DNA of 64,000 nucleotides, from sequence record MT366760.1; one strand, given 5' to 3'. Below the pieces are notes generated by a model, which searched no databases, was not told the origin of the DNA, and worked only from the letters and a program-made list of their open reading frames with translations. The stretch's first letter is position 1; the number at the start of each line of letters is the position of its first letter. Shown here in pieces: positions 3,001-54,418 of the stretch. A program made the translations under genes and the position numbers.

Positions 3001-4236
3001 GTATTCTTCGATGTTGTCGAACTGTGGGATAAATACGACGTTACCATCTGGGTTAACAGCTAAGCGTTCTTCATTGATGCGTGGACGTTGAACCATTTCT
3101 TGCGTGATGCGACGAACGTTAGTAAGTGGGTTAACGATTTCGATTTCTTCAGTACCATTCATAGAGTGGTTGAAGATTGCCGTTGCCCATGCGTGAATAT
3201 CAACAGGGTTGATTTCTTTAGCTTTAGTCTGAACTAGGTACTCGGAAATTTCAGCGGGTATTTCAACCTGAACAAAAGCAGCAAAGTTCTGACGGGCGTT
3301 AGTAGCACTGATAATCGACTTATCAAGGAAGTTGTCAACGTATTCCTTCTTGATTTCATCAGAGATATGCGCCATAGCATTAATCTCTTCTACTGAAGTC
3401 GGGATTACGTTTTTACCATCAGGCATCGGGATTTCAACAAAACCGCTATAGTTGTAACCTTCAATGATACGAGCGGGTAATGCAGTAGCAGTGAAGCGGA
3501 TACCCTTGATAAATGACAAATACATATCAATGTCTTCATCATCGTAGTCAGTGAGGATACCGGCAGCGTCTACAAATCTGCTGTTAAGCAGTAGATCTTT
3601 GGAAACGGGTAGTGTGAAGTCGATAGGTTTAGAGAAGTCACCAAGTGCACCACCAGTTAGCTTAGACATCTGTTTGGCAAACGCCATACGCTGTTGCTTA
3701 AGGAGTGGCTCTTGGTCTAGATATGAAATACCCATCAGTCTAGGTCGCGAATTCGCGTAACCTAGCGATTGATACATACCGTCGATACCTTGAAGAATAG
3801 GTAAGTTAACTGAACAAGGAATATCCATGGTGAAACCACGACCTTGTCGGCTAATCATCAAGTTGTTTATCTTAGCACCAAGTTGTTCAAACTGAGTGTC
3901 CCACTTATCTTCGTTAGGAACTAGATTAACAGTATTAGCCTCTCCGAAGTGGTTAGACTTCATGTCCTTAATCAGTTGCTCGTGATTAGTGAAGTTCTTT
4001 TTGTAGTACTCAGCGATTACGTCTGGTGTGTTAGACAAGTTATCGTAGAGAGCTGATTGAGCTGCTACATAAGCTAGGTAAACGATGTCTGCGAAGTTGC
4101 TCGATACGTAATCGTAGAACTCGTCATAACCTTCTGGAGCGTCAATAGCTGAATCCGTAAAGGACGCGGCTGTTGCCAGTTCTCTTTCATCGTCTAGTGT
4201 GGCTTCTACTGCCTCAGCTAGTTTTTTCTTCTTCAT
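1..4236 (-). CDS. SNF2/SWI2-family (SF2) helicase/ATPase with ~690 aa unique N-terminal region; partial, runs off left edge
   Basis: Missing from the ORF track because it is incomplete. ATG at 4236 follows AAGGA. Manual translation of stretches gives PHQVRADAEL..VLHVDAGGGKT (motif I), YVSGDESHLLKN (DExH), GKVLIFT and TGHNFQFVNRLIRIENIWNPGDLEQAASRLNRP (helicase C lobe). The frame is still open at position 1. Confidence 0.85.
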   Translation of the reverse strand, partial: MKKKKLAEAVEATLDDERELATAASFTDSAIDAPEGYDEFYDYVSSNFADIVYLAYVAAQSALYDNLSNTPDVIAEYYKKNFTNHEQLIKDMKSNHFGEANTVNLVPNEDKWDTQFEQLGAKINNLMISRQGRGFTMDIPCSVNLPILQGIDGMYQSLGYANSRPRLMGISYLDQEPLLKQQRMAFAKQMSKLTGGALGDFSKPIDFTLPVSKDLLLNSRFVDAAGILTDYDDEDIDMYLSFIKGIRFTATALPARIIEGYNYSGFVEIPMPDGKNVIPTSVEEINAMAHISDEIKKEYVDNFLDKSIISATNARQNFAAFVQVEIPAEISEYLVQTKAKEINPVDIHAWATAIFNHSMNGTEEIEIVNPLTNVRRITQEMVQRPRINEERLAVNPDGNVVFIPQFDNIEEYYSLMQDALQDGDEEEWVMRSPFTLATNARSVGEPMPTEDAPRKKLAKKPANKLLYLDWALNKMSYTNTDGEVSILDLANYRKANAFGIRKILESKVEEDVNVKMFGYMRTVLQKSGKSLGEFADESEFDMLYFYENDEAKEQSVKWLRRYLDNSNFELFIERVSNNAREALGQNPPQQYIEALETLTSSDLLQLRDLAPNSNLVPLRCIGRAFDFINDKVLEDLDDVFESRSVVAGMMGIARITVCAKYTPRYAEVLEQDKSERSAYQASIDIDSNYKPQPIPFLFDGYAYLPHQVRADAELNRDPENGVLHVDAGGGKTHIILADVFRQMGRLFQDKKLGGKRRPLLMCPNNLIKNYVEDTIFMTQGKVNIIVVNTKTMNQYGEEKLAEMIEKAPVNTLVISEFDFMRNKPVNFAYGNTTVDMSLNCEFMRQFDWIYVSGDESHLLKNTGSKRSSFVGRLTADIDKRRIATGTFIHGMLQDAAGQFAQLDPTVFGSQKAFIEEYAAEVDRGKVVRWHDDAVPKVSEKVREHSNFIRISRKEWAALLPPATEEFHRLDLSRAQRDVYQSLLEKAIEEIKNNPQLMAKLKAGNEEDSAAIEMMLRPYLQRLEKFLAAPDTDELGETLLQGDDLVSPKAKKVIEILRNHESGYTDLSGNEHGAQSGKVLIFTSYIKSAESIYNALPPEIKEKTMLYYAADGVKATKRFERDNNYRYLIGTEMSLNTGHNFQFVNRLIRIENIWNPGDLEQAASRLNRPDPKQLFEKRTNIFFDWLICDGTIDVTKCGRLISKLLDTTRFNEENNPLYADIPNLELVSMTLNSILEDNEFGSADEPGSLWEYLEAYQDVARARKQDYANWATAYKGPTEPVPVPSAGMLPGSALMDVPYIDNMQLPYTQELGIIPLNDYLSDAGLEVENLDMKGMRVHTEYGDGIVTSGSKHRVNVELDIGGKVSVSKLATFIIESSDTRPVKERLAEILELGVVSIDPFDVDEEDVEETQDE

Positions 4237-5124: not shown

Positions 5125-5869
5125 CGAAGAACTTGTCCATCTTTTCCTGTATCTTTATGAAACGTTCTTCAACACCACGACACATCTCTTTAGTTGCGTC
5201 ATCAATTGCACGGATACCTTCGTTTTCACGGTCGGAACGTAAATCACTTTGTAGTGACTTCTTAAGTGCGAACATCTGGTCTATGAATAATTGTCCGAAA
5301 GATTGGAACACTGGTTGAACTACCTTAGTGATAACGGCAGCAGCCATGTTGGACTGAGCATCGTTAGCCTGCATGTCACCAATTAACTCACGTACTTGTG
5401 AGATTAGTGCATTCATAGCATAAAGGTCATTAGCAATACCCTTGTCACGATACTTAGCTTCAGCTTCTGGGATTAAGTCTACTAGAGTCCTAATCATTGA
5501 TACTTGGAACTTAGCGACACCCTTGTCTTTTTCCGCAGCGGACTCAAGCATGTCTTTGATACGCTCGGCATCATCACCGAACAAACTAGCGAGGGACTTT
5601 TTGAATTCCTTTTCGGTCTTCTTGACGTATTTCGGGTCTACTTTAACGTCCTCTTCTACTACAGCTACGGGAAAACCCGAGGATTTTTCGTCCTCAGGTT
5701 CACCGTTGTCGCAGTGCTCACATTCAGGTCGCTTGCGGATAGCTTTGGTGCTGAACCTACGTTTCTTTTCACAATAGATACATAGGCAACCCCATTCGTC
5801 ATCCTCTAATTTCTTAGCAACGCGAAATGAGCCGAGGATAAGACCCTTTTTAATTTTGGTCTTAGCCAT
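5117..5869 (-). CDS. hypothetical protein with N-terminal CxxC..CxxC Zn ribbon and helical C-terminus
   Basis: CIYC and CEHC pairs; overlaps neighbours at start/stop (translational coupling). Confidence 0.7.
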   Translation of the reverse strand: MAKTKIKKGLILGSFRVAKKLEDDEWGCLCIYCEKKRRFSTKAIRKRPECEHCDNGEPEDEKSSGFPVAVVEEDVKVDPKYVKKTEKEFKKSLASLFGDDAERIKDMLESAAEKDKGVAKFQVSMIRTLVDLIPEAEAKYRDKGIANDLYAMNALISQVRELIGDMQANDAQSNMAAAVITKVVQPVFQSFGQLFIDQMFALKKSLQSDLRSDRENEGIRAIDDATKEMCRGVEERFIKIQEKMDKFFDD

Positions 5870-6333
5870 TATTTATTAACCTTCTTCTTATCAAGCTTAT
5901 TGCCGATTTTAAGTTTCTTAACATTATAGTTCTGGATAAACCTGTCAGTTGGCGGGTTCATAGTGTAAGCAGTTAAGTCTGTTGGTTTAACCCATTTAGA
6001 CTTTGAATGCTCAGGGTTGAGTTTAGGGTCAAACTCTTGTGGAACGTCCAACAGGTAATAACGGTTTAGGCGGGAACCATCAGAGAACTCCATGAGCTTA
6101 ACAATCGGACCTCGGATAACCATACCAAGTTCTTCTTTTAGCTCACGGAGTGCGCCTTCGATAAATCTCTCACCTTTGTCAACACCACCGCCAAAGAAAT
6201 TCCAGTTGCCGGAGTTGTTAACGTGTTTTGACCTTTTACCTATTAGTATTCGTCCAGTGTCCAGTGCGCGAATAATCATCCATGCACCCATCTTTTCTTT
6301 ACTCGCCAAAACAGTAAGCCTCTTTATCGTCAT
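5869..6333 (-). CDS. NUDIX hydrolase
   Basis: Nudix box GGGVDKGERFIEGALRELKEELG; C-terminal EHSKSKWV. Confidence 0.9.
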   Translation of the reverse strand: MTIKRLTVLASKEKMGAWMIIRALDTGRILIGKRSKHVNNSGNWNFFGGGVDKGERFIEGALRELKEELGMVIRGPIVKLMEFSDGSRLNRYYLLDVPQEFDPKLNPEHSKSKWVKPTDLTAYTMNPPTDRFIQNYNVKKLKIGNKLDKKKVNK

Positions 6334-6339
6334 TATTCG

Positions 6340-8148
6340 TTACGCCTTTTTCCAGATAGCCGTGATGTCTACCCAGTTTTGTTCAACGCCATCGTCGTCT
6401 GGAGTCTTACGCTCTGTAACTCGTAATTCGCTAGCCACGTGATTACGAGATTGTAGCCAACTGCTTACCCAGTTCTTAGCTACACGTGATGGGGTTGACA
6501 TAAAGGAGAATTTAAGCGCGGGATATTTCTCAGCATCTACTTCACTATAAATGATTTCAGTTGGTAGACCACTTACGTAATCAGTACCGCGAGCCATAGC
6601 GTTCTGGAAGTCGGATGTTTCAAAACGTTGTAGCTCTTTAGTTAGTTTCTTACGTGAAGCTTGCTTGTCTTCCTTAGCGTCTAGTACGTACTCTTTAAAG
6701 TTGAAGTCGTCTGACAGACTTTCCATGAATTCGTAACGACGTTGGTATTGAGTCTTACCCATGATGATAAGTGACCAAGAACGTGCGCCAGTTTTGAATA
6801 CTGCATACGTACCATCGTCACCTGAATGTTTCATGAGGAAGTAAATATCACCACTATCATCAAAGTATTTACCAACTTCTTTGAACTTCTCGCGTTTTAA
6901 TTTCGGGAAATATTCGGAAATTGCTTCAGTTGGGTCAGATGATGCGCTTACACTTGCACCCAATACTGTTTTAGCTAGACCACCGAACTTCTTAGCCCAT
7001 TTCTTATAGATGGACTCTGCTTCGTCTTCGTCACCTAGTGTGATGTTGTCAGCACGTTGGTTTGGTACAGACTTAATAGGTGGCTTAGCTTTACGAAGTT
7101 CTTTAAGGAATGCAGTTAGACCCTTAGCAGACTTAAGGTCTTGCATTTCGTTAGCGATGTACACTGACTTAGTGACTGCTACAGACTTAGAGTTCCTGAT
7201 GAGTTCAGCAGCTTTCTTGTAGTCAACTTCAACGGCAGGTGAACCCTTCATGATGTATTTAACTTTGTCGCCTTCGAAGCAAATCTTTTGCTTACCACGG
7301 TCAAGGCTAACAACACCGTATACACCACCACGTTCATCTGGTGATTTAGTAGCTTTACCCGATTCATTATCAACCGAGAAGCCACCCTTCTTGTTGTCGT
7401 CTACTTTCGGTTCAGGGATTGGATTCATTACGTCTGGTGTTTCAATCCACTTCATAAGGTTTTGTGGTTTGATAGCTTTATCACGGAGCTTTTCACCTTT
7501 ACCCGCTTGGATGAAACCAACTAGGACATTGGTAGAAACCATATCCGTCTTGTCACCTTTGTCTAGTGCAATGGTCATCATCTTAGTTGCTTTGCTATAG
7601 GTCTTAACAGTAGCAGCCATTAGCTTCTTACCGCGACGTACAATAATACGTTTACCCTTAGCAAGCTTAGCAGGGTTACAAACTAATTCACCCTTAAGCA
7701 ATTTAGTCATTTGTTCTTTAGGGAGTTCAGTGACTTTGCCTACTTTGGATTTACCACCGTCTTTCTTACCCTTCTCTTTCATATCACCAACTGGTCGCTT
7801 GCCTTTGCCAATTGCAACTTCAAGCCATTTGTTGATTTCATTTTCAGGGATTGGGCTAACACGTTTACGTTTGATCTTAGCTTTACCAACTAAACCAACT
7901 AGTGAACGGGTTGCCTTATATGACATCTTGATTCCATCATCGAATACGATGAAGACAAGGTTGTCTTTCTTGTTAAGACGTGTTACCGACGCAGGATAAT
8001 ACTCGGGTTCCTTTGTAGTGTTATCATTGATAATAACACGGTCACCCCGTTTTAAATCGTCGATTAGCCCCGCTTCTTCAATGAATGCAGCAATCTCAAT
8101 AGGCTTATCATTGTGTGTAGCAGAGGCAACTGTGACTTGTTTAATCAT
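6340..8148 (-). CDS. Lys-rich protein with repeated Tudor/KOW/SH3-like beta-barrels; putative internal virion protein
   Basis: KRGDRVIINDNTTKEPEYYPASVTRL..VFIVFDDG and KGKRIIVRRGKKLMAATV.. repeats; N-terminal MIKQVTVAS motif. Confidence 0.6.
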   Translation of the reverse strand: MIKQVTVASATHNDKPIEIAAFIEEAGLIDDLKRGDRVIINDNTTKEPEYYPASVTRLNKKDNLVFIVFDDGIKMSYKATRSLVGLVGKAKIKRKRVSPIPENEINKWLEVAIGKGKRPVGDMKEKGKKDGGKSKVGKVTELPKEQMTKLLKGELVCNPAKLAKGKRIIVRRGKKLMAATVKTYSKATKMMTIALDKGDKTDMVSTNVLVGFIQAGKGEKLRDKAIKPQNLMKWIETPDVMNPIPEPKVDDNKKGGFSVDNESGKATKSPDERGGVYGVVSLDRGKQKICFEGDKVKYIMKGSPAVEVDYKKAAELIRNSKSVAVTKSVYIANEMQDLKSAKGLTAFLKELRKAKPPIKSVPNQRADNITLGDEDEAESIYKKWAKKFGGLAKTVLGASVSASSDPTEAISEYFPKLKREKFKEVGKYFDDSGDIYFLMKHSGDDGTYAVFKTGARSWSLIIMGKTQYQRRYEFMESLSDDFNFKEYVLDAKEDKQASRKKLTKELQRFETSDFQNAMARGTDYVSGLPTEIIYSEVDAEKYPALKFSFMSTPSRVAKNWVSSWLQSRNHVASELRVTERKTPDDDGVEQNWVDITAIWKKA

Positions 8149-8261
8149 TTCTATCTCCAGTTACTTCACCAAAGTCTACAGGTTTAGAGGTCTAAAACCC
8201 TATTCCCGTGTTATGTGTTCATATGACTAAATTAGCCAGATTTCTAACTATTGTCCAGATA

Positions 8262-8289
8262 AATAAAGGGACAATGAAGTCCCTTTATT
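8262..8289 (-). terminator. intrinsic terminator
   Basis: 11 bp perfect stem AATAAAGGGAC/GTCCCTTTATT directly after the stop of 8295..8600. Confidence 0.7.
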
Positions 8290-8294
8290 GGTGT

Positions 8295-8600
8295 TTATCG
8301 GCGGTTTTTAACCCTAATAGAGAGCTTCTTACGCTTCATATTAGACTTGCGCTTTTCAGCAGCAGTCTTCTTATCCGTACGAGTAGTACGAGTATCACCA
8401 CGCTTCTTACGAATAGCCGCCTTCTTAGCACGACGTTTAATTTCGTTTTTATTCTTGCGGTAGTACTCTTTACGTTTTTGTTTAAGCTTTTGCTTATTCT
8501 TCTGACGGTAACGCTTAGCAGCTTTCTTGTCAGATTCAGTACGTTTTTTAGTGCGGCGTGTATCAGTCTTAGACTTCAGTTTCCGCTTCTTCATGACCAT
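8295..8600 (-). CDS. small highly basic K/R-rich protein (histone/protamine-like)
   Basis: Roughly half of the residues are K or R; in-operon position after the ligase. Confidence 0.7.
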   Translation of the reverse strand: MVMKKRKLKSKTDTRRTKKRTESDKKAAKRYRQKNKQKLKQKRKEYYRKNKNEIKRRAKKAAIRKKRGDTRTTRTDKKTAAEKRKSNMKRKKLSIRVKNRR

Positions 8601-8611
8601 AAGTTAAAGTC

Positions 8612-10510
8612 CTATATTGTGGGGTTATACTCCTTAGTAAATTCAGTTAACGTGAACTTATCACCAGAGAACCCATCTATTTTCTTATTGGTAGCACCAT
8701 CTTTGTAGACAAGCATAGTCGTCTTACCAGATAGATTACCAACGGTTCCACCTTCTTGCGTAATCCATTCAACTAGTTCAGGGTTACGGAAGCTTGTGAG
8801 TGTTACATGCTGACCACTCATGCAACCATCTTCGTTAACTTCAACTTCTTCTGGTTCTTCTGGCATGTGATATTCAATGCCAGATTTGATAAGCTTTTTC
8901 ATAAACTTCTGGAATGGTTTTAGACCATCGACAAAAGTCTGTGCCGTTTTATTCCAACCACCATTTGCCTTTAAGCGTTCAACCAACTCAGTGTCCTTAG
9001 GTGACAACTCCATTGGGTCGCCCAAACATAGGACAGCGTCTCTGAGTTTAGTGTCACCCATGCCACGACCGAACAGTGCACTCGCTACCATGTAGTCAAC
9101 AATGTCGCCATGCTTGAGTTCCTCAATAGCTCGACGAACGTCCTTAACTTTTGAAGTACCGAAACCGTCAATCTTAATCAAGTTGCTTTCCTTGATTTTA
9201 AGGAACTTAAATATATTGGAGTAACCCTCTTCAACTAACTTGGCTAATGTACCGTGTTTGATACCTTCAACGCCCATAGTAGAAATGAAGTGAGTAAGTT
9301 CCTTAATGATTTGAACGTCAGTCTTAGAGGTTGACACAATATGTACTTCTTCACCATCTTCGTTAGTCGTCCATGTATAATCAAGGTCAGGCATATCCGC
9401 TTTCTTGTTACCTTTAATGACGGACATCACATAGGGTATCACGTCACCAGAACGGATGACTTCAATTGTCGAACCTTTACCTATCTTATTATCAAGGATA
9501 TACTTAGCATTGTGACCAGTAGCATGGTTAACCATGACGCCACTCAACTCAGTTTCTTCTATGATAATTCTAGGGATAAGGTAACCATAACGACTTTGAT
9601 TCCATTCAACCTCTAGCACTTTAACTTGCTTGATTGCATCAGGGTCATGTGCCTTGAAAGCTACTGACCACTCAGGATTACCACTTTTGTTGATTGGGTG
9701 AACTTGGTCTTGGGTTAGAATGATACCATCTAGGGCAAACGCTGACTTCTTACGACGTTTCATCAAGTATTCATATAGAGTGTCTTCGTCTAGCTCCGTG
9801 AACTTCTTGTGTTTAGGTGTGATGAAGCCGCGCTTTTCAAGTTCTTTGAATTGTTTGGATGGTTTCATACGAGGACGTACAATCTCGTAGGCAATTAATG
9901 TAACGTGTTTAGTTAGTGGGTGGATGTCTTTACGCATCGGGTTAGTTAAACCCACGACAGCACCACGAGGGTCGTTATAGTCGTCAGAGAAATGGGAGGT
10001 GTACACTGCGTCTGCTATTTCTAGCTCACCGCGAATTTGCCACCCATCAGGTAATTTACCCATACCACTTATATGGGGTATAAGACGACTAATGTTGTGA
10101 CCCTCAGCACCACTACTACGTTTGTAAGCTGATATCTTTTTACCAGTTCGCTCTAAACCGATTGAGACACCGTCTTCTTTATCAGAGGCTCTCCATGGTC
10201 CTGGGTACTTTTTGGCGTATAGGTCTAGCGCTTTCTGCGTTTTAACCTTATCCATTGAACCCATGTAAAATGGCAGCTCTTCCTTTTCAGCTTTGTCATC
10301 AGATGTACCGACGGCAAGTGCTGATGAATCGGGTTTTCTCTCACGTAGTGCATCTTCGAAAATGTCGTATACGTGGTCGGGTACGAGAGTTTTAGAAGTT
10401 GAGTAATATGCATGTTTGAATTCACGCACGTATTCTTCTAACTTTTTGAGGGAGAGTGAAGCAACAAACTTTTCGGGTTGCTTCAAAATTTTCTTTATAT
10501 CTTTACTCAT
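8612..10510 (-). CDS. ligA: NAD+-dependent DNA ligase
   Basis: KEDG adenylation motif, IRGE, DGII, VAFK, OB fold (WNQSRYGYLIP), HhH repeats, C-terminal BRCT. Start moved to the ATG at 10510 (AAGG RBS). Confidence 0.95.
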   Translation of the reverse strand: MSKDIKKILKQPEKFVASLSLKKLEEYVREFKHAYYSTSKTLVPDHVYDIFEDALRERKPDSSALAVGTSDDKAEKEELPFYMGSMDKVKTQKALDLYAKKYPGPWRASDKEDGVSIGLERTGKKISAYKRSSGAEGHNISRLIPHISGMGKLPDGWQIRGELEIADAVYTSHFSDDYNDPRGAVVGLTNPMRKDIHPLTKHVTLIAYEIVRPRMKPSKQFKELEKRGFITPKHKKFTELDEDTLYEYLMKRRKKSAFALDGIILTQDQVHPINKSGNPEWSVAFKAHDPDAIKQVKVLEVEWNQSRYGYLIPRIIIEETELSGVMVNHATGHNAKYILDNKIGKGSTIEVIRSGDVIPYVMSVIKGNKKADMPDLDYTWTTNEDGEEVHIVSTSKTDVQIIKELTHFISTMGVEGIKHGTLAKLVEEGYSNIFKFLKIKESNLIKIDGFGTSKVKDVRRAIEELKHGDIVDYMVASALFGRGMGDTKLRDAVLCLGDPMELSPKDTELVERLKANGGWNKTAQTFVDGLKPFQKFMKKLIKSGIEYHMPEEPEEVEVNEDGCMSGQHVTLTSFRNPELVEWITQEGGTVGNLSGKTTMLVYKDGATNKKIDGFSGDKFTLTEFTKEYNPTI

Positions 10511-10552
10511 TTTGTTGCCTTGATGGTTAATGGGTATACCCACCAATTTACA

Positions 10553-11230
10553 TTAAGATATTGGATACTTACCGATTCTGTCGTAACGGTTGTCTACCCA
10601 TTCAAAGAACTTATCTAATTTACCTTTAGATTTATTTTTTACGTTCTTTGCAAAACCATTGGCAAGTAGTTGCGTCGCCATGGGTACTGTCTCAATGTAA
10701 TTACCTAGCATGTAAGTGTCAGAAGCCCACTTACCACCCGCAATGCCCATATCAAGGAGCTTAGCTAAGTATTCGCCATTCTGCTTAGTAGTGGTGTAAT
10801 CGTTAGCACTGTCAGAATAGCGCTTTTTCCACTTATCGAACTTAGGGTCTCTTGGGTTTTCACCAAGCAACCTTAATAGCAGTTCACCGTTCTTAAGCAT
10901 GGCGTGAGTTTGTTGTTCTTGGAATAAGACAGCGTGTAAACATTCATGAAGAAGAATGCTCCAACCATATTTATCCTTAAACACTTTGGGAGTTACTTTG
11001 ATTATCCGCTTATTCGTCTTACCAGACCACTCAATTGAGTAAGCAGCAAAACCCCCACCTGGTAATGATTTTACCGCAGTGAAGGGTTTGATGCGTAACC
11101 AACTCTGAATAGGTGGTTTATATTTGGCGGGTACTTTCTTAAGCATAGCTCGTACAGCGTCATCCTTAATAGGGGTACCCTTTTCAGTGACCAATAGGGA
11201 ACGGGCGGCAATGACCTCAATCCGTTTCAT
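10553..11230 (-). CDS. HExxH zinc metallopeptidase (SprT/zincin-like)
   Basis: ILLHECLHAVL motif; N-terminal MKRIEVIAA motif. Confidence 0.65.
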   Translation of the reverse strand: MKRIEVIAARSLLVTEKGTPIKDDAVRAMLKKVPAKYKPPIQSWLRIKPFTAVKSLPGGGFAAYSIEWSGKTNKRIIKVTPKVFKDKYGWSILLHECLHAVLFQEQQTHAMLKNGELLLRLLGENPRDPKFDKWKKRYSDSANDYTTTKQNGEYLAKLLDMGIAGGKWASDTYMLGNYIETVPMATQLLANGFAKNVKNKSKGKLDKFFEWVDNRYDRIGKYPIS

Positions 11231-11309
11231 AGAATATAAACCTATTGGGTATTAACCGATAGTCGGGGTATAGGCTTAGCTGAGAAAGCAGCTAATATCT
11301 CTTTAATCA

Positions 11310-11813
11310 TTATGACCAATCCTTCTTAATAGGTTGTGCTTGTTCACGGTACAACTTAATTTCAGTATCTTTTAGAACTGAGTCAAGTTCTTCACGAACC
11401 TTCTTAGGCACATTAGCTTCACCCATTGAAAGAGTGATGTGTGGTTGATAGTCAGGCCATGTTGGTTTACCACCCGCTTTCTTCCACTTCTTATGAACTT
11501 TCTGAAGTTCTGGTGATTCTAGTTTAAGAACTAATACGTCTTTGTCCTTACCGAACATATCAGTACCCATAACTTTAGAAGGATAAATGTAATCGGGTTT
11601 AGCCAACTTCATTTGTTTATCTTTAGGGATGTTCTCCGTTGAATACATTGCGGTTACATGCAAAGAACGTGGGTCAACTAACTTGAACCCTGATTCATCA
11701 AACTTATTCAGTACACGGTGTACCTTAGTAAGCAACTGAAACATCGAACTAGGATGTATCCGCAATTCAACATAGGTGCCCCCAATCGCGGAGGCAGCTA
11801 CTTCTTTAATCAT
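11310..11813 (-). CDS. acb1: 2H phosphodiesterase, homologue of anti-CBASS nuclease Acb1 (T4 gp57B)
   Basis: Two HxT motifs (LHVTAMYS; DYQPHITLS), VLVLKLES and C-terminal REQAQPIKKDW parallel the T4 57B motifs as recalled (HSTICYS, DYTPHITLS, LVLVLDS, REYKEPLKLDW). Confidence 0.8.
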   Translation of the reverse strand: MIKEVAASAIGGTYVELRIHPSSMFQLLTKVHRVLNKFDESGFKLVDPRSLHVTAMYSTENIPKDKQMKLAKPDYIYPSKVMGTDMFGKDKDVLVLKLESPELQKVHKKWKKAGGKPTWPDYQPHITLSMGEANVPKKVREELDSVLKDTEIKLYREQAQPIKKDWS

Positions 11814-13642
11814 ATGTTACCTTTAAGTCTTTCTATTTCTTTCTTGATACGGTTGGCTTCTATATTAAGTTCAACCTTACGATTCATTTGTACTTCGTTG
11901 GCAATTCGCCTACGAATTATTTCCAATTCAGATGTTAATTCGCGTAGCCTACGTAATTCAGTTGAAACCCCAATATCGTCAGGGTCTTTTAAATGGTCTA
12001 GCAGTGTTCTTGCTGTGGTTTTTTGTACTTGACCGAATTCAGAAGATATCCCAATGAATCGAGCTATATTATGTTCTAGTACTAGAACATTAGCTGAGAC
12101 TGAATTAGGAGGGAACCCATATTTATCTATGAGTAAAGCAGCTTTATTATCCGCGTTAGACCTAGCAGCACTTTCTTTATGATAGATCTCAGTCCAGTGT
12201 CTACCATCATAATTTGGTGCCGCCCATAAAACTACGTAGTAAGGATCTAGCACACGTCTCCCCTCGGTTAACTCTGAAAACTCAGTATCATCAAAATATT
12301 GGTACGGAGTAGCCATCTTACTATTGTTTTCAGCAATTGCATCGAACTTAGGTGACACGGGTTTGTTCTTATCCACTGAGTCAGAGAACTTTTCAAGCAT
12401 ACCAAAAATAGGTGGCTTGATAGGTTTCAATGTGTAGGTCTTTTTGGGTTGTGTTATTTCAGTTCCACCGAGTCCATAAGGGAATGTATAAATACCCACA
12501 AACTTAACCTTGTCATTGTCTACGAATAATGATGCACCCCTATAGGCTAAATTTCTATCCTTAAATGCCATAGCATATTTAAAGGTTGAACCACCCGTGG
12601 GTTCATAAACAACTACAAAATTAGGTTTGGCTATCCTACGACCTGAAGGTTCAATGTAATCTAATTTAACGAATTCTTCAAACTCTTCGGCAGTGTTGGT
12701 CTGTGCAAGTGGAACCTTCAACTTATTTTCCAACTTAGATTGCCACGAATGGAACGTCTTACCGTGCCATCCGTTATCCTCGACGAAGTCAGGTCCGAAT
12801 TGTTCATATTGCCATTGATGCACCATTTCATGCGCTAGAGTACTAATCATAAGCCATGCTGTTTGTAGCTTAATTGAATTTAAACGTATCTTTGTGTCGG
12901 GTGAATTATATACTCCACGAGGCCACGAGAATACACCTAAATTCTTTTTATTTTTAAGTGTTAATATGAACTCAGGTATTTCTTTTAATGTACCTTTGAA
13001 CACCTCTGAATCAATGTAGTAGAAACCTGATCTTACTAGAGCTTGTGACAACACTATTTTCTGAGATTTGTCTCGGAAGAATTCTATGATAGGCTGATCT
13101 GTGATAGTAAGTGATTCATAAGCAACGGCTCTTGAAGTCATTTTCCAGTCACGAACACGCAAAACGTTAGAGTCCCTTTCAAGTAACCCATTATACTTAA
13201 CGTTTACTTCAGTGTATGCGTCAGTTTCTATAACTAAGGAAGAACCCTTGGCGTAAACTACAACACCGTAAGTATATTTGTCGGAGCCCTTATTTTTAAA
13301 AGCAACACGCTCACCTGCGGTTATATCCCTAGTCTTATTAGATGACTTATCATTCTTAGAAGTAGAGAGCCATTTGTCTAAGTTTCTTGGTTTTATCTCT
13401 GATTTACGTTTTTTAGATTTAAGCGCGTGTCCGAGTATCCCGACTTTAGAGGATGTAGCTTTATATTGCCACTTCTCACCGTCATCAAACAAAACGTAAA
13501 CTAGATTATTAGCACGTGATATCTTAGTAACAGAAGCAACGTAGTACTCAGGTTCCTTTGTAGTATTGATGTTTACAACTACACGGTCACCCTTAGAGTA
13601 ATTATCAATAAGGGCACTAACTATGATGTGTTTAAATGACAA
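11810..13642 (-). CDS. two Tudor/SH3-like domains fused to a SprT-like metalloprotease
   Basis: LAHEMVHQWQ..HGKTF SprT motif; N-terminal domain paralogous to 6340..8148. Start moved to the TTG at 13642 (AAGGAG upstream), which removes the overlap with 13701..15050 and gives MSFKHIIVSA. Confidence 0.75.
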   Translation of the reverse strand: MSFKHIIVSALIDNYSKGDRVVVNINTTKEPEYYVASVTKISRANNLVYVLFDDGEKWQYKATSSKVGILGHALKSKKRKSEIKPRNLDKWLSTSKNDKSSNKTRDITAGERVAFKNKGSDKYTYGVVVYAKGSSLVIETDAYTEVNVKYNGLLERDSNVLRVRDWKMTSRAVAYESLTITDQPIIEFFRDKSQKIVLSQALVRSGFYYIDSEVFKGTLKEIPEFILTLKNKKNLGVFSWPRGVYNSPDTKIRLNSIKLQTAWLMISTLAHEMVHQWQYEQFGPDFVEDNGWHGKTFHSWQSKLENKLKVPLAQTNTAEEFEEFVKLDYIEPSGRRIAKPNFVVVYEPTGGSTFKYAMAFKDRNLAYRGASLFVDNDKVKFVGIYTFPYGLGGTEITQPKKTYTLKPIKPPIFGMLEKFSDSVDKNKPVSPKFDAIAENNSKMATPYQYFDDTEFSELTEGRRVLDPYYVVLWAAPNYDGRHWTEIYHKESAARSNADNKAALLIDKYGFPPNSVSANVLVLEHNIARFIGISSEFGQVQKTTARTLLDHLKDPDDIGVSTELRRLRELTSELEIIRRRIANEVQMNRKVELNIEANRIKKEIERLKGNI

Positions 13643-13700
13643 ATTTAGCACTCCTTTGAAGTTAGGAAGAGGGGTGATGGTGTACCACCCCTCGTGTTCA

Positions 13701-15050
13701 CTACTGGCGAACCTTCTTACGAAGCTCCACACGGTCTTTAACAGCACATAATTTACCATAGGCGTCTTGCATTTCTGCATAATCCTCGGTAGTCATGTAT
13801 TCATAACCGGATTCAAGCATCTTAGTAGCGTCCATGATTCGACCCATTAGGGGAACAGAATCATCCTGCATTGCAGTAACAACGCTCGCCATTTGCTCTT
13901 GAACGGATGCCCATTCAGACATAGGACGTTGTTGTTGGTAGCGCATACCATCTGGCATACCCATCCCTGCTGCGCGTGGTGAATTGAATTGACCAACACC
14001 CATTGGGATTTGTAGACCTTTAGTGAAGGACTCGTTGATATCGAATTCGTCGTCACCGTCAGCTTGTTCACCACCTGAAGCGTGATTAAGAATAGAGTTC
14101 TTAAGCGTTGCTTCGAATAGTTGTGCAGCTTGTTGCATCTGTTCCAACGACATAGGATAGCTACTCTGGCGCATTGCTTCCATTAGGTATCCAGTGATAT
14201 CATAGGTCATCTTGTTATCTGAATCTAGGGCTGCTAATGTGTCACCACCACCAGTGTAGTAGCCTTCCGGATTAGCCGCAGGGTAACCGAAGAAGTACGC
14301 ACATGATGGGCAGTAGCCAGTCGAAGGCCAAATTTGTTTCAATTGACAGCGTGGGCATGTCATGTTCAGAGCAACTGAAGACTCTTCTTTTTCCATACCG
14401 TCGTTGGTTTGTGTTGAACCATCATTATCAACTTCTTTGTCTTCTAGTTCTTTGACTTTTTCGTCAACGACCTGCGGAGCATCTTCTTCACCTTCGCCAC
14501 CCATATGCATTGTTTGGTCAGGGCGGTTAGATGGGAAGAAAGGACTGTCATTGTGCTTACCAAAAGGTGTACCGTAGTACTGACATGATGCATCAAGATA
14601 CATGTGCACGTCTTCCTGTTTAACACCATCAGTAGATACATCACCATTCCAACGACCAATGATACCTATACCGCTGTTTGTTGGGGCGAATGTTTCTGTT
14701 TCACCGTTGATGCTAACTGATACCTTCTTACCAACGCGAGTAATTTCACCCGCGTGGAATTGTGGGTTACCCCAAGATGGTCCTTTGTTGACAAGTACTT
14801 TTTCGCCTTTGTTGTAGCGAATGTTACCTGCTTCTTCTTTAACCATCCCGTCTTGACCAGGTTCCTTTTTAGTATTCCATGAGGAATCTAACTCATTATA
14901 GAACTCAATCTTTTGTGATGGTGTTAGTTGATTAGGAGAAGTAACGTTGTACTTCTTCAACATGTTTTCGAAAAGCTCTTGATATGAAGAAGCTACCACG
15001 TTCATGCGACTAGCGACGTTAGCAGCTACCTGTTTAACTCCGTTTCTCAT
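13701..15050 (-). CDS. hypothetical probable head-associated protein (SH3-like domain, CxxC Zn ribbon, acidic linker)
   Basis: YNKGEKVLV..AGEITRVG barrel; CPRC/CPSC; N-terminal VKQVAA/NVVAS motif. Confidence 0.6.
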   Translation of the reverse strand: MRNGVKQVAANVASRMNVVASSYQELFENMLKKYNVTSPNQLTPSQKIEFYNELDSSWNTKKEPGQDGMVKEEAGNIRYNKGEKVLVNKGPSWGNPQFHAGEITRVGKKVSVSINGETETFAPTNSGIGIIGRWNGDVSTDGVKQEDVHMYLDASCQYYGTPFGKHNDSPFFPSNRPDQTMHMGGEGEEDAPQVVDEKVKELEDKEVDNDGSTQTNDGMEKEESSVALNMTCPRCQLKQIWPSTGYCPSCAYFFGYPAANPEGYYTGGGDTLAALDSDNKMTYDITGYLMEAMRQSSYPMSLEQMQQAAQLFEATLKNSILNHASGGEQADGDDEFDINESFTKGLQIPMGVGQFNSPRAAGMGMPDGMRYQQQRPMSEWASVQEQMASVVTAMQDDSVPLMGRIMDATKMLESGYEYMTTEDYAEMQDAYGKLCAVKDRVELRKKVRQ

Positions 15051-15059
15051 GGTAGCTCC

Positions 15060-15884
15060 TTATACTAGGCTTGAGTTCTCTAGTTCAGTTTCTAATTGGA
15101 CATAGAAGTCTGGGTTAGATTGAGCTACAGCAACAAAATAGTCTTTAAGTTGTTGTGGGTCAGACAGGTCATCAAAGTTAGAAGCGATTTCTGCGTTAAC
15201 ATCCATGCCATTCATATTAACTACCTGAACAACTTGTGATGCGTCAACACCTGCTACTACTGTGAATGAGTCAGTTGAGATGATTGAATTTTCAGTAACA
15301 CGGTAACCGTAATCAACCGCCGCTGTTTCTGTATTAACGAAAGCAACGTATTCTGCGGCTTCGATAGAAACCTCACTGCCGATAGGTTCAATAGTTGCTT
15401 CAACGTTAGCTACTTCTTTGTTACGAGTAGAAGCAAGTGAAACCAATTCACTTAAGTCTTCTTGGAACTGACGTGTGATGAATTTAGCACCAGACTCGGA
15501 AGCAGACACCTGCCACATTGAGCTATCAACTTCATCCATCAGGATGTTGCTAGACATCTCACGCATACGGCTTGCTACTTCTTCAGTAAGCGGCATTGAT
15601 TCAACGTTAGGTGCAATGAAACCAGATAGTACTACGCGACCAGTGTATGGTGAGATATCAATTGTACGGAATGAATCACGAACTGGACTAACCTTGTTTC
15701 CGAACACGTTAGCAATCGCAGTGTTAGCTTCTTCGCGTGTTTTTGGTGTACTCGAAAGAGTGACAATAACTTTAGCAAGTGCAGGGTTGACTAGGTGATG
15801 GCTAGTAACCTTCGCGATTGCGCCTTGTTGTGTTTTAGCGTGTACGCGAGTTGCAATGCTCTTCATATTAAGACGATTAGACAT
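15060..15884 (-). CDS. hypothetical probable virion structural protein
   Basis: Codon bias like the capsid genes; GGAG RBS; EVAS/EIAS motifs. Confidence 0.55.
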   Translation of the reverse strand: MSNRLNMKSIATRVHAKTQQGAIAKVTSHHLVNPALAKVIVTLSSTPKTREEANTAIANVFGNKVSPVRDSFRTIDISPYTGRVVLSGFIAPNVESMPLTEEVASRMREMSSNILMDEVDSSMWQVSASESGAKFITRQFQEDLSELVSLASTRNKEVANVEATIEPIGSEVSIEAAEYVAFVNTETAAVDYGYRVTENSIISTDSFTVVAGVDASQVVQVVNMNGMDVNAEIASNFDDLSDPQQLKDYFVAVAQSNPDFYVQLETELENSSLV

Positions 15885-15909
15885 CGTGTGTCTCCTGTGT
15901 GTTTAGCGT

Positions 15910-16626
15910 TTATTCAATATTCATATTAGGGTGCCAGTCTTGACCGGATAGGTTACCACCGCCGCGAATCATTGGGGATAGTGTAGCACCAGTAGCACCT
16001 TGAACTCGACCTTTCCAAGCGGAGCCGTCACCCGACGAAATACCTTTCTTGGCTAGATAAGCTTTGTGATTTTCGATACCCTTCTCGATTTGTTGCTCGA
16101 TGAAAGATGCTTGATTTTCTAGGTATTGAGTTACGTCCACGGTTAACTGAATTGCCGCACCTTGATAATCGAATGAAGTTAGACCTTCTTCTAGGTAACG
16201 GATTCTTAATGCAACTAGTTGGCTATACATCATCCAATAACCATAAATAGCGCCTCGAGCGTTGGTCATGGTGATGTAGGTTGGACGTGCAGCGGAATTG
16301 TACATATCCATGCCTGATTTCAACCAGTTCATGTAGTCAACATCAGAAAACTCTAAGCTATCTAGTCTCAAATGTTTATTGAGTCGGTCAACATACAAAC
16401 GTAGCTCTTGGGCTGCTTGCATGATAACTGGACTCTGTACGTAGACGTTCTTAGACGTGTAATTAGACGTTCCGTCCTCAGTAAATACCACGTTATATGG
16501 AATTAGTGAGGGTTGTAGCAAATCTTCGCTTATAGTCAAAGATACATCGCCTAATGCGTTAGTTTCTAGTGCTTGTTCCTGCACTAGTGTGTTACCTGAG
16601 TATACTTTAGCTGTGATACTAGCCAT
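15910..16626 (-). CDS. probable head-tail adaptor / neck protein
   Basis: ELRLYVDR..FSDVDYMNWL..GMDMYN and SFDYQG..LTVD pattern typical of adaptor proteins; context. Confidence 0.45.
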   Translation of the reverse strand: MASITAKVYSGNTLVQEQALETNALGDVSLTISEDLLQPSLIPYNVVFTEDGTSNYTSKNVYVQSPVIMQAAQELRLYVDRLNKHLRLDSLEFSDVDYMNWLKSGMDMYNSAARPTYITMTNARGAIYGYWMMYSQLVALRIRYLEEGLTSFDYQGAAIQLTVDVTQYLENQASFIEQQIEKGIENHKAYLAKKGISSGDGSAWKGRVQGATGATLSPMIRGGGNLSGQDWHPNMNIE

Positions 16627-16634
16627 GGTATTCC

Positions 16635-18044
16635 TTAATCAAATATAATGCACTTGGCGGTTACAATTGAACCAGGTTTCAATGCGTGACCAGTTGCGGT
16701 ATTACCTGTTGGGTTTTCCAACTTGACCTCAAAGTATCGTGCGTTAGCGGGAACAGCACGAGTAAGAGTAGGGATGGAAATGGTGAATTGGTCTGAAACG
16801 TCGGCTGACGATTGAGAAACTTGGAGTGGTAATGCAGACGATGGGTAATCAACATCGACGAATGCAGTTACGTCTGTTACTGCAATGTCTATTGTGTGGT
16901 CAGATCCAGTATCACCAGTGTTCACGACGACGGATAAAGGACTACCCATTTTAGCGTAGTACTCATTAGCAGTGAAGGAGTAGAAGTAGTCGTCTTCCTT
17001 CACAGTGGCTGAAGCTTCTGCTGTACCACGAGTAGCGTTATCCGAAACAGAATTCACTAGAAGTTTGAATAGTAAGTCACCTTGAGATATTTCATCATTA
17101 GTGATTACTACATGAACCTGAGCTGTTGTTTGACCCGTAGGTATAACAACACTACCAGTAGCAGCAACGTAGTCTGTACCCGCAATTGCAGTTGAGTCTT
17201 GAGTAGCATAGTTGATAACAACCGGACTAAGGACTGCGAAGCTCGCAGTGAACGTGAAGGTTGCTGTTGATGCGTCCTCATTAACAACGATATCCGCAAC
17301 GGTGATGATAGGCAAATCGTTATCTTGAATAGTACATTTGAAACTAGTTGTTGAATGTGATGCACCCTCAACATTAAAGATATCTAAAACGAATGCTCTA
17401 TCAAGTTCACCAAGTGAATTGTCAACAGTAGGTACTGAAACGGTGAACGATGTTGAACCTGCCGGTATGGTTACATGACCTGACTGAGGAACGAAATCAC
17501 CGCTAGTCGTGGTCAACGCACGTGTTGCATAGACAAAGGTAACGTCAGACGTAGAGGCAACTGATAAGTTGAAAACAAAATCAGCGACTTCACCTTCGTT
17601 AATCGTGATATCTGAACTGGACAACACGGGTACGGTATGGGCTAGGTGTGGGAAGTTAACACTAACGACAATAGGTACACCCTGCATTTCTACAAGTGTG
17701 TCATCAACGGCAGCCGTGTCCATATCTGCAACGGTGAAGGTTACCGTGTTAGTATACTTAGTGCTACTGGTCTTAGCGGTGACATTGAACTTGATGAAAT
17801 AGGTTGTGATTGTCTCGATGGGTAAGTTAACTGGAACCATAACCCTAGCTTTAAGAGACATACTGGTTTGACCGGATGGTAAGGCATTTACTACAGGTGG
17901 TTCACAAACACCTTGTGCGTATAGAACACCGGATTCATCCATTAGTTCCCAGAGACAACTTGAGTTAATCAAGTCTTCTTCATTGGCGACAAAAATAGTC
18001 GAATTGAAGATGTGTGTATCACCTATTGATAATTCAGGTGTCAT
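16635..18044 (-). CDS. Calx-beta (Ig-like) repeat virion protein
   Basis: Two clear Calx-beta repeats (ITINEG..VYAT..GDF..SG.VTIPAG.T..V...DN..E.D..F; IVVNED..YATQDSTAIAGTDY..GSVVIPTGQT..ITNDEI) and a third degenerate one. Confidence 0.8.
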   Translation of the reverse strand: MTPELSIGDTHIFNSTIFVANEEDLINSSCLWELMDESGVLYAQGVCEPPVVNALPSGQTSMSLKARVMVPVNLPIETITTYFIKFNVTAKTSSTKYTNTVTFTVADMDTAAVDDTLVEMQGVPIVVSVNFPHLAHTVPVLSSSDITINEGEVADFVFNLSVASTSDVTFVYATRALTTTSGDFVPQSGHVTIPAGSTSFTVSVPTVDNSLGELDRAFVLDIFNVEGASHSTTSFKCTIQDNDLPIITVADIVVNEDASTATFTFTASFAVLSPVVINYATQDSTAIAGTDYVAATGSVVIPTGQTTAQVHVVITNDEISQGDLLFKLLVNSVSDNATRGTAEASATVKEDDYFYSFTANEYYAKMGSPLSVVVNTGDTGSDHTIDIAVTDVTAFVDVDYPSSALPLQVSQSSADVSDQFTISIPTLTRAVPANARYFEVKLENPTGNTATGHALKPGSIVTAKCIIFD

Positions 18045-18474
18045 TTTCGTTATCCTCCCGTTCTACTAACTCTTCAAGATCATTCTCACTTAAGAAGTCT
18101 TTTACGTTTAAAGATTCAACGGGTTTCATCCAAATTGGAACACCGTTACGTTCTCGGTATTGGTAGCTATGCTTACCATCATCATCAGGAATAAACTTAC
18201 CGTGTTTATTCCAGAAGAAGTCAGCGCGTATCTCATCGTTAGAATCAACTACGATAGCATGGGTGACGAATACACTGTTCTTTTCCTTAGAACCCAATAG
18301 GTGTATTGTCTCTGTACCGTCAGCGTATTTGGTCAGATACTTAGCGATAAGTCCGTGGCAGTCTTTGCCGTGCGCGGGTGCCATCGGGTCATTAATACCC
18401 TTAAGCGTATTAACCATGCGCTTCTTCCATGAGTGACCAGTCATAGCTAGAGTGGCAGCGTGTTCTTTTATCAT
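18034..18474 (-). CDS. hypothetical protein (146 aa)
   Basis: Coupled ORF overlapping both neighbours. Confidence 0.65.
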   Translation of the reverse strand: MIKEHAATLAMTGHSWKKRMVNTLKGINDPMAPAHGKDCHGLIAKYLTKYADGTETIHLLGSKEKNSVFVTHAIVVDSNDEIRADFFWNKHGKFIPDDDGKHSYQYRERNGVPIWMKPVESLNVKDFLSENDLEELVEREDNENDT

Positions 18475-19268
18475 AGGAACCCTTCCGACGTTAGCAGTGA
18501 TTTTAAAGTTGTGATTGCGTCATCAACAGAGGAAACTTGACGACCATGTGGGAAAGTTGCAGGAGCACGGAACCCAGGTAATGTGTTAACATAGAATGTA
18601 TCCTTACCAGAGCTGTCCTTAATGTGTGTTGCTACCACACAGTAGTTCTTATACGTGAAACCGGATACGTCTTCAAGACTGCTGAATTCTAAGTATGTTG
18701 TGTAGCGCATACTGGTCTTGTTGTTGGCGTAAACATCAAGTATTTTAGCTTCTGATGTAGTTCGTGCTTTATCGTTAAGAGCAACGTGAGCCATATCGAA
18801 TGTACGTTGAACAAATTCGGAGAAGTCCTGAGTCACATATGATTCGTAGTTGGACTTAAGTAGGGATTTGTATTCGGTCATACGCATTGCGACGTTTGTC
18901 TTGAGTGCCGCAACGTTTGACATGACGGAATCATATAGGTCGTCATCCTTGAATTTGTATTTGACTAGAGACTCAATTGATTCTAGTTGTGACATCAATT
19001 CTTGTAGTGCGGAGAGTCTAGCAAAGTTGTTATCAACTTCACCGATGTCAGGGATGTGTGACCTCCAGTCATAAGTAGGTTGCTCTTCTAGGCTACTTAC
19101 TTCTAGACATTTAGATGCATTTCGCGGGTCAAACGAGTTAGCCAACTCTTCGTCGCTAGCCACCTTATTCAAAATGTTAGATAAGGCAGTGAGTACCTCG
19201 CTTGTATTTCTAAATCGAAATGCATCCAACTTAGAGAACGAAGCTACTTCAATTCGTTTAATACTCAT
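18471..19268 (-). CDS. hypothetical protein
   Basis: Start at 19268 (AAGGA RBS) gives MSIKRIEVAS, the shared N-terminal motif. Confidence 0.7.
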   Translation of the reverse strand: MSIKRIEVASFSKLDAFRFRNTSEVLTALSNILNKVASDEELANSFDPRNASKCLEVSSLEEQPTYDWRSHIPDIGEVDNNFARLSALQELMSQLESIESLVKYKFKDDDLYDSVMSNVAALKTNVAMRMTEYKSLLKSNYESYVTQDFSEFVQRTFDMAHVALNDKARTTSEAKILDVYANNKTSMRYTTYLEFSSLEDVSGFTYKNYCVVATHIKDSSGKDTFYVNTLPGFRAPATFPHGRQVSSVDDAITTLKSLLTSEGFL

Positions 19269-34187: not shown

Positions 34188-34240
34188 TGTTCGTATCCTT
34201 GTTGTGTTAGTGGGGCTGCAATGAGCCCCTTATTATCAAT

Positions 34241-36334: not shown

Positions 36335-36336
36335 AA

Positions 36337-37479: not shown

Positions 37480-37487
37480 TTTTAGTC

Positions 37488-39204: not shown

Positions 39205-39234
39205 TATAGTGCTCCTTTAGTTCACTATATTTAT

Positions 39235-39241
39235 TTTACAG
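39235..39241 (-). promoter_or_regulatory. CTGTAAA motif
   Basis: Directly after the queC terminator, 31 nt before the QueC-like ATG (AAGGAG RBS). Confidence 0.55.
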
Positions 39242-39244
39242 AAT

Positions 39245-39273: not shown

Positions 39274-39283
39274 AAATTAGCGT

Positions 39284-45645: not shown

Positions 45646-45647
45646 AT

Positions 45648-53326: not shown

Positions 53327-54418
53327 ATGAAAAAATTACAATTAGCAGGTCTTAATGCTAACCGTCCTACTCTAGTATCAGACCTAACACTAGCAGGTTC
53401 TAACAGCCGACTAGTCGGTCAGAATGGTGAATTCAACGTTTCGAACAACGCTGAACTTCTACAGGTTGTTGCGCAAGTAATGAGCCTAGCACAGGGCGGT
53501 CAAAAGATCGTAACTGAAGCACAAGCAGTTGAAGCAGAATCAGCAGCTAAGACTCACAAAGAAATGATTATGGCAGCTTTCGAATCGAAAGATGAACTAA
53601 TCGCACTTGGTGAAGTTATCGCTGAAGACGTACAAATCACACAGAACCGTGATGGTTTCATGCGTCGCTTCCTAGCTAAGCAAGAACTTGAGCAAGGTCA
53701 AATCCCACAAATCCGCATCAACCAGAAAAACGTTGCGGGTGTGATTGCTACTTCAGCTACTCAGACTCAAACTCAACTTCTACGTGACAACACTCAATAC
53801 CCTAACGAGTTCTATGTAACAGCTCGTCCGTTTATTGAGCAGAAAGACATCAGCCGTAGCACGACTGACATCCTAGAAGAAAAATACATCGACACTCTTG
53901 AAGCTGTAATGGTTCAAGAAGACCGCATTTGGAAACAAATGGCAGATGAAACTCTAGGTCTTTCTAACGAGTTCACTAACATCGTCGGTACAATGAATAC
54001 AGCGGCACTTGCTGCTCTAATCAACAAGGTAACTCGTTGGGGTCTACCTGCTAAATACTGGCTAATCGCTAACGACATCTGGACTGACGTAATCGCAGAT
54101 GCTTCGTTCCGTGACCAGTTCAACGCAACATCATACGCTGAAGAACTAGTTCAGACTGGTACTATCGGTAACATCTTCGGTCTAGAAGTTGTATCAGATC
54201 AGTTCCGCCATGAAGCTCACAAAGTTCTAGACGCAGGTGAAATGTACGTACTATCTAGCCCAGAAATGCATGGTCAATACACTGACCGTGATGGTCTAGA
54301 TGTTCGTCCAATCGACGACACTCATGAAAACGTTCCAGGACGTGGTTGGGTGATGACAGAGCAAATGTCTATGGCTATCGTGAACAGCCGTACTGTTGCG
54401 AAGGCTAAACGTCAATAA
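53327..54418 (+). CDS. major capsid protein (HK97 fold)
   Basis: Extreme codon bias, strong terminator downstream, E-loop/P-domain-like pattern (MRRFL..QELEQGQIPQI; IGNIFGLEVVSD), position in the head module. Confidence 0.8.
   Translation: MKKLQLAGLNANRPTLVSDLTLAGSNSRLVGQNGEFNVSNNAELLQVVAQVMSLAQGGQKIVTEAQAVEAESAAKTHKEMIMAAFESKDELIALGEVIAEDVQITQNRDGFMRRFLAKQELEQGQIPQIRINQKNVAGVIATSATQTQTQLLRDNTQYPNEFYVTARPFIEQKDISRSTTDILEEKYIDTLEAVMVQEDRIWKQMADETLGLSNEFTNIVGTMNTAALAALINKVTRWGLPAKYWLIANDIWTDVIADASFRDQFNATSYAEELVQTGTIGNIFGLEVVSDQFRHEAHKVLDAGEMYVLSSPEMHGQYTDRDGLDVRPIDDTHENVPGRGWVMTEQMSMAIVNSRTVAKAKRQ

Follow-up and report, generated by a model that had tools for sequence, protein, structure and literature searches.

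The Vibrio phage vB_VcorM_GR7B (GR7B) is a myovirus of about 208 kb belonging to the phiRSL1/PaBG lineage, and the stretch of its DNA analyzed here (the window; 64,000 nucleotides) corresponds, at 100% identity, to bases 62001-126000 of the 207,758-bp genome MT366760.1. About ten of its proteins, including several enzymes and a scaffold-like protein, start with a loose motif of approximately the form M-x-I-K-x-[ILV]-x-[VA]-x-A-[SA], which we refer to as the leader (Table 1). Based on identity of the major head protein, the relatives of GR7B include phage GR11A (83%) and the Pseudomonas putida vB_PpuM-Aura group (54%), with BCSR5, phiRSL1, BcepSauron, PaBG, Lu11 and many Erwinia jumbo phages lying farther away; Aura is the nearest cultured relative beyond the Vibrio pair.

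The leader genes, apart from that of the scaffold-like protein, sit within a continuous minus-strand block (window 1-20342). The block begins with a giant SNF2-type helicase, p148, HNH, p250, the NUDIX hydrolase, a 602-aa Tudor-like protein and a small basic protein; continues with an NAD ligase, a protein with an HExxH motif, an Acb1-like enzyme, a Tudor-like/SprT-like protein, p449 and p274; and ends with a head-tail connector-like protein, a Calx-beta protein, p146, p267 and p354. Synteny of the block extends to GR11A, Aura and three uncultured relatives, with the helicase at its head in all relatives, and the connector-like gene anchors the synteny with Aura and with the related loci L017, L019 and L020. 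(Scanning IMG/VR with the connector protein, or with its alignment, returned 0 relatives.) Because the helicase gene is cut by the window start, only the N-terminal 1411 aa of this 1665-aa protein are included.

Table 1. Leader-bearing proteins and context genes of GR7B (window coordinates).
Feature	Coordinates	Strand	N-terminal motif (coordinates)	Basis of assignment
NUDIX hydrolase	5869..6333	-	MTIKRLTVLAS (6301-6333)	Pfam NUDIX, E=2e-17, domain from residue 17
602-aa protein, two Tudor-like units	6340..8148	-	MIKQVTVAS (8122-8148)	Sequence; Tudor sub-threshold
225-aa HExxH protein (HECLH)	10553..11230	-	MKRIEVIAA (11204-11230)	Sequence read directly
Acb1-like 2H phosphoesterase	11310..11813	-	MIKEVAAS (11790-11813)	Pfam Acb1, E=4e-20, from residue 12
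Tudor-like and SprT-like protein (HEMVH), TTG start	11810..13642	-	MSFKHIIVSA (13613-13642)	Pfam SprT-like, E=2.6e-9
449-aa protein, two tandem motif copies	13701..15050	-	MRNGVKQVAANVAS-RMNVVAS (14988-15050)	Sequence
146-aa protein	18034..18474	-	MIKEHAATLA (18445-18474)	Position matrix, 15.9 bits
265-aa protein	18471..19268	-	MSIKRIEVAS (19239-19268)	Sequence, leave-one-family-out test
SNF2-type helicase (candidate member only)	1..4236	-	ELATAAS, residues 19-25 (4162-4182)	Pfam SNF2-rel_dom, E=4e-17
Scaffold-position protein (PHROG label 'ATPase')	51018..52484	+	MKRKISVIAS (51018-51047)	Gene position
Head-tail connector-like gene (context)	15910..16626	-		phrog_17327, E=9.5e-34
Major head protein (context)	53327..54418	+	MKKLQLAG, motif-like	phrog_2522, E=1.7e-71

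A short leader shared by otherwise different proteins

The original prediction, made by reading the sequence, quoted eight N-termini with the consensus K-x-[IVL]-x-V-x-A-[SA] on what it took to be unrelated enzymes, and proposed that they mark proteins for packaging into the phage head and for injection alongside the DNA as an immediate counter-defense. All eight are present at the genes named, and those of the scaffold-position and 265-aa proteins start identically in GenBank. For the Tudor-like/SprT-like protein, GenBank places the start of GR7B_00088 at window 13759, where it overlaps the preceding gene; we accept instead the TTG at 13642, which is preceded 8 nt upstream by a ribosome-binding site, AGGAG, and lines up with the start of the GR11A orthologue (MRIVHVSAL). 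The 146-aa protein is a ninth member that the original list lacked. As worded, the consensus fits two N-termini only when applied strictly and five when one residue of slack is allowed, the relaxed version matching nine sites genome-wide, five of which start at residue 2-4.

The contention that the carriers are unrelated holds for most of them. The 602-aa and Tudor-like/SprT-like proteins are paralogous to each other, with a Tudor-like domain in common, and to a fourth protein encoded outside the window (genome 126982-128031; MKTMTIGTLVVPAS), which in turn shares a phrog_28651 domain with the 449-aa protein; given these shared domains, three of the eight cannot be called unrelated. The others are alike in the leader alone: After removal of the first 20 residues, no similarity is detectable among the remaining leader proteins, so that at least seven families without other resemblance have the leader in common. 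The domain labels proposed for these proteins are mostly secure, the NUDIX, Acb1 and SprT-like assignments being recovered by Pfam and the HECLH and HEMVH motifs being read directly (the 225-aa protein matches no family in either Pfam or PHROG), but the Tudor label depends on sub-threshold matches in relatives only. As predicted, the gyrase, RNase H, helicase and que-cluster proteins do not have the motif. Dihydrofolate reductase (window 43003-43587) also lacks it at the N-terminus but has an internal match, RTIKVIAAF at residues 15-23, which forms its first beta strand and is a chance occurrence; that a strand of this enzyme follows the same pattern implies that the leader is itself strand-like.

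The best characterized of the carriers is the Acb1-like enzyme, which Pfam assigns to PF23474 at 72.5 bits (against a cut-off of 27) and which has two invariant HxT motifs, H52-x-T54 and H125-x-T127. Its AlphaFold2 model (predicted local distance difference test, pLDDT, 91.7) has the Acb1 of phage FBB1 (7t26) and a BCSR5 phosphodiesterase (9q2y) as best matches in the PDB, with a probability of 1.0 and template-modeling (TM) scores of 0.74-0.77 against 7t26 and 7t27. By family, motifs and modeled fold, this protein is a predicted Acb1-type 2H phosphoesterase, i.e., one acting against the cyclic-oligonucleotide-based antiphage signaling system (CBASS). Residues 1-8 of the model fall below a pLDDT of 50, and the first strand begins at residue 13.

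The leader is a detachable, modular add-on that lies outside the enzyme folds, and the Pfam domains of the carriers begin after it. The leader is present on the NUDIX orthologues of GR7B, GR11A and L017 (the last from a GTG start overlapping the stop codon upstream), whereas in Aura and L019 the protein begins with the domain itself, which indicates that the choice of tagged proteins from a common gene set differs between phages, as would be expected of a modular signal. The 146-aa protein has orthologues beginning MTIKVVAAIA (GR11A) and MIKTIAAT (L017), the 265-aa protein has a counterpart in L019 beginning MIKTIRIVAS, the GR11A orthologue of the HExxH protein begins MVIKRIHVEIAA, and in that of the SNF2-type helicase, ELVTAAS occupies the same place as the GR7B stretch. 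The more distant L020 displays a flavor of its own (LEVAGIAS on Acb1, LEVTAG on the Tudor-like protein, QIVTAS on the counterpart of p146), with V-[AT]-A-G where the Vibrio phages have V-x-A-S, and in phiRSL1, which is too distant for this comparison, the motif is not clearly seen.

If these resemblances were accidental, matches would not be expected to concentrate at the N-termini of one block. The pattern [IVLF]K.[ILV].[VA] finds 7 N-terminal matches in GR7B where 0.86 are expected, all but one of them within the block, and N-termini of the form ^M.?[IF]K occur in 7/17 genes of the 16-kb block versus 5/227 elsewhere (Fisher p = 1.4e-6; the corresponding counts in Aura are 3/20 and 4/201). 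When trained solely on examples from other phages, a position matrix recovers 10 N-terminal matches scoring at least 6 bits in GR7B (1.2 expected), compared with 2 in the control phage Aura (1.1 expected). Leave-one-family-out testing put 7 of the 10 families within the top ~1% of 234 other N-termini, a figure inflated by the choice of families for their likeness; the 449-aa and Tudor-like/SprT-like proteins were borderline (p=0.06 and p=0.07, respectively). The pattern V.?AS, fixed beforehand and applied to loci gathered later, produced 7 N-terminal matches against 1.6 expected (P = 0.0013). Between GR7B and GR11A the amino acids of the leader are kept, while the codons for its conserved residues vary freely across genes and phages, and from this free variation it follows that selection acts at the level of the peptide rather than of the RNA.

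The leader on proteins of head assembly

The leader is not confined to the enzymes of the block. The scaffold-position protein owes its name to where its gene lies: in phiRSL1 it falls between the protease gene and that of the major head protein, and in Aura it immediately precedes the virion structural and major head protein genes. All five relatives compared, namely GR11A, Aura, a distant homologue and two metagenomic proteins, preserve the core of its leader, [ST]-[VM]-I-A-S. Motif-like elements also occur near the N-termini of portals, which have GKHTVTSS, RKVVTAG, RMTTIAS or KMRVLAS at about residues 15-25, and of the prohead protease, in which KRKEIATAS (about residues 25-33) occupies the linker ahead of the catalytic domain. 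Many homologues of the protease have elements in the same place, e.g., KRKEINVAS, KKKDIAS and KRKDVTLAS.

The protease in question, GR7B_00060, was located by way of Aura and, like the portal (43310-45094) and terminase (45388-47676) genes, lies outside the window (41569-42345; all in genome coordinates). It matches phrog_18299 ('head maturation protease', E=5e-77) and has more than 400 metagenome homologues, with invariant His, Ser and His residues. A sequence search of the PDB gave no useful match; the only credible structural neighbor of its AlphaFold2 model (pLDDT 86) is T4 gp21 (5jbl; probability 0.91-0.94), and on the strength of the family match and this model we take GR7B to encode a gp21-like prohead protease. 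Another gene, GR7B_00016 (genome 9907-10281), is labeled 'Peptidase_S78_2' in GenBank, but Pfam did not reproduce the label and we rejected it as the protease. That processing takes place in the wider lineage is known from PaBG, in which proteolysis affects virion proteins including the major head protein, the latter losing about 20% of its mass at maturation (PMC7412058).

Relatives of GR7B place the leader within the head module itself. In the uncultured SRR33375180 (L016), whose protease is 62% identical, the interval from terminase to portal holds, just upstream of the protease, four consecutive, unrelated genes with leaders (NIKVVSS, MNIKVTST, MKIKVVAST and NIEVISAL), and none of these four has detectable similarity to any GR7B protein. 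In Aura, Tudor-like proteins flank both portal and protease. The motif takes a longer, more specific form in SRR33375180_11472 (L016:4693-8187, L019:8700-9137), in which three otherwise different proteins have in common a leader of about 18 residues that ends HNI[KE]V[IV][AS]S.

Explanations for the leader

On balance, the evidence tips toward the leader serving as a head-targeting signal, a protease-cleavage signal, or both, in which case its carriers would be internal head proteins released with the DNA and the phage would bring counter-defense enzymes along in its capsid. We infer that the carriers would be recognized while the prohead assembles, the leader binding as an extended strand to the substrate groove of the gp21-like protease (the simplest arrangement) and/or to the scaffold core. 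It would probably then be cut off beside its terminal pair of small residues (A-S, A-A or A-G), leaving the carriers as internal proteins that would enter the cell together with the DNA. The proposed cargo comprises the NUDIX hydrolase, the Acb1-like cyclic-nucleotide phosphodiesterase, two metallopeptidases of the HExxH/SprT type, the Tudor-like and small proteins, and perhaps also the giant SNF2 helicase.

This arrangement has a precedent in T4, whose internal proteins (IPI-III, Alt and others) have a common N-terminal leader of 10-20 residues, the capsid-targeting sequence, and whose carriers of that sequence include counter-defense proteins (PMC3012670, PMC5694885). The parallel drawn by the original prediction is good as to logic: In both phages a short N-terminal peptide occurs on otherwise unrelated proteins, a gp21-type protease is encoded, and in GR7B the motif is detachable and recurs on the scaffold-like protein, near the N-termini of portal and protease, and on head-module genes of L016. 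It is less good as to detail, since the consensus is looser than that prediction had it and its carriers are partly paralogous. Moreover, GR7B belongs to a phiRSL1/PaBG-like lineage, its leader differs in sequence and has no terminal Glu, so that the T4 cleavage motif (hydrophobic-x-Glu) is not found, and its carriers are Acb1-like, NUDIX and zincin proteins whose packaging is predicted from sequence. Nor do the leaders fit Sec, Tat or lipoprotein signal peptides, in which a hydrophobic core of about 7-15 residues comes behind a basic N-region and ahead of a signal-peptidase site; they are 8-11 residues long with polar residues interspersed (as judged by sequence; no predictor was run).

Other phages and viruses show further parallels. 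In phiKZ and SPN3US, one protease trims the portal, the major head protein, the protease and ejection proteins at a short motif (PMC5694885, PMC10052503), but that motif is A/S/G-x-E and most of the propeptides exceed 100 residues, whereas the GR7B leaders are about 10 residues long and have small-residue ends, and neither they nor the portal and protease elements contain the Glu. The giant helicase-type anti-restriction protein DarB of P1 is packaged under the direction of its N-terminal 30 residues (PMC9024508); the GR7B block likewise starts with a giant helicase that has a motif-like stretch near its N-terminus, although no sequence relation between the two was looked for or noticed and the DarB signal, unlike the GR7B leader, is not known to be common to many proteins. 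Peptidase domains of the zincin type are a typical feature of polyvalent proteins that are packaged into heads (PMC5512222). A herpesvirus assemblin has predicted sites after Ala and before Ser/Thr (PMC4498786), and assemblins are said to belong to the fold class of phage prohead proteases and to have catalytic residues and structural elements in common with the T4 prohead protease (PMC5694885). Many GR7B leaders end in the residue pair of an assemblin site, an analogy of residue type only, with no homology of substrates. We predict that the leader acts in the manner of a capsid-targeting sequence but breaks the Glu rule of T4 and phiKZ.

A more elaborate form of this idea, which we advance tentatively and consider doubtful, is that the mostly uncultured lineage of jumbo phages with this protease family loads a changeable set of enzymes (among them an Acb1-type cyclic-nucleotide nuclease, a NUDIX hydrolase and zincin proteases) by means of a strand-like leader that is cut in the manner of assemblin and not after Glu. 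Anti-CBASS and other counter-defense activities would in that case reach the cell alongside the DNA, or else be controlled by the very protease that CBASS senses. In the searchable literature, no such leader is described for the phiRSL1/PaBG lineage. If the predictions hold, the leader would constitute the code by which a large and little-studied group of jumbo phages loads its heads or directs cleavage, allowing injected cargo to be read from sequence alone; the Acb1-like enzyme would be the first Acb1-type nuclease delivered pre-made with the genome; and the specificity of the gp21-like protease would depart from the Glu rule that T4 and phiKZ follow. It is the cargo list, i.e., the Acb1-like enzyme, the NUDIX hydrolase, the zincins and perhaps the SNF2 helicase, that gives the finding its value.

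Several observations weigh against head targeting or cleavage. T4-type proteases cut after Glu, and there is no conserved Glu behind the GR7B leaders, which end in A-S, A-A or A-L. The match of the protease to the gp21 fold is modest (E ~0.01, TM 0.44-0.47), and the scaffold-like protein has just a mild excess of internal motifs (3 versus 0.46 expected). In Aura, most of the syntenic proteins are missing the motif's second half, and no enrichment is detected by the position matrix. Part of the statistical case rests on families picked for looking alike. Finally, the motif is short, composed of common residues, variable in spacing and low in information, and blind searches missed it. When unsupervised expectation maximization (EM) was run on all 244 N-termini of the genome, it did not recover the motif: One run drifted to a degenerate Lys-rich pattern and another returned an artifact of mis-called starts ('E..F.MT'), best explained by over-long open reading frames in which residues encoded by the ribosome-binding site precede the true Met-Thr start. 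A Smith-Waterman graph of N-termini had similarity in excess of shuffled sequences, but its top cluster consisted of Lys-rich N-termini and not of the motif.

An alternative that we judge unlikely, though with more to recommend it than those that follow, is that the leader is a tag for processing by the prohead protease and nothing else, so that late trimming in the cytoplasm would switch or time the proteins with no loading into capsids. The motif-like elements that the portal and the N-terminal linker of the protease itself contain favor this explanation, and in the uncultured relative L022 (SRR21418948), an Acb1-family gene is located directly downstream of the prohead protease gene (8001-9390). 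According to a recent preprint, prohead-protease activity triggers CBASS (PMC12991175), and placing an Acb1-type enzyme under the control of that protease would then make sense. However, the same leader on the scaffold-position protein and on genes of the terminase/portal/protease interval points to the prohead, and the short shared leaders already known, in T4 and P1, are packaging signals.

We consider it improbable that the resemblance arose through chance, paralogy and compositional bias (Lys, Ile, Ser and Thr following the initial Met), with no common function. Such an origin would account for the failure of the unsupervised searches, for a strict consensus confined to two proteins, for the shared domains that link three of the listed proteins, and for the 'MIK' starts found elsewhere in the genome; but it would not account for a motif that is position-specific and clustered, conserved at the level of protein and not codon, replicated with a pre-fixed pattern on later loci, unenriched in the control phage Aura, and present on different L016 proteins beside portal and protease.

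There is a slim chance that the leader is a docking strand for some partner unrelated to the capsid, such as a chaperone, an oligomerization interface or a host AAA+ protease that reads N-termini. The beta-strand-like character of the peptide, its pattern being that of the first strand of dihydrofolate reductase, and the disorder of the leader in the isolated Acb1 model are consistent with docking, which, however, leaves unexplained why the scaffold-like protein, portal and protease carry the motif and why leader genes are nested in the head module of relatives. Lastly, an RNA element around the start codon exerting translational control, as might be entertained for genes in one co-directional block, is rejected because synonymous positions vary freely both between genes and between GR7B and GR11A and because an Rfam search of the window produced no match, and the upstream regions are alike in their ribosome-binding sites only.

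Other features of the window and of related phages

The minus-strand block has only two sizeable gaps, at window 8262-8289 and 11276-11295, and each contains a symmetric GC-rich hairpin that is terminator-like on either strand. The presence of such hairpins in both gaps suggests that the block is divided into three transcription units. Elsewhere in the window, ARAGORN detects a tRNA-like structure with an abnormal two-base anticodon (49562-49646) in an otherwise unannotated stretch (49472-50277).

Among the relatives, inteins occur in a terminase gene (L015:3787-6465) and in a 1057-aa gene at the portal position that has a LAGLIDADG domain (L021:4801-7974). Phage contigs of relatives also encode CsrA (L016) and GGDEF/EAL proteins (L021). 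Within GR7B, annotation places a set of 7-deazaguanine genes, two of them QueC-like, at window 33039-42483, next to a second gene for DNA ligase and one whose annotation is lysine 2,3-aminomutase, a neighborhood that may point to an unusual modification of DNA.

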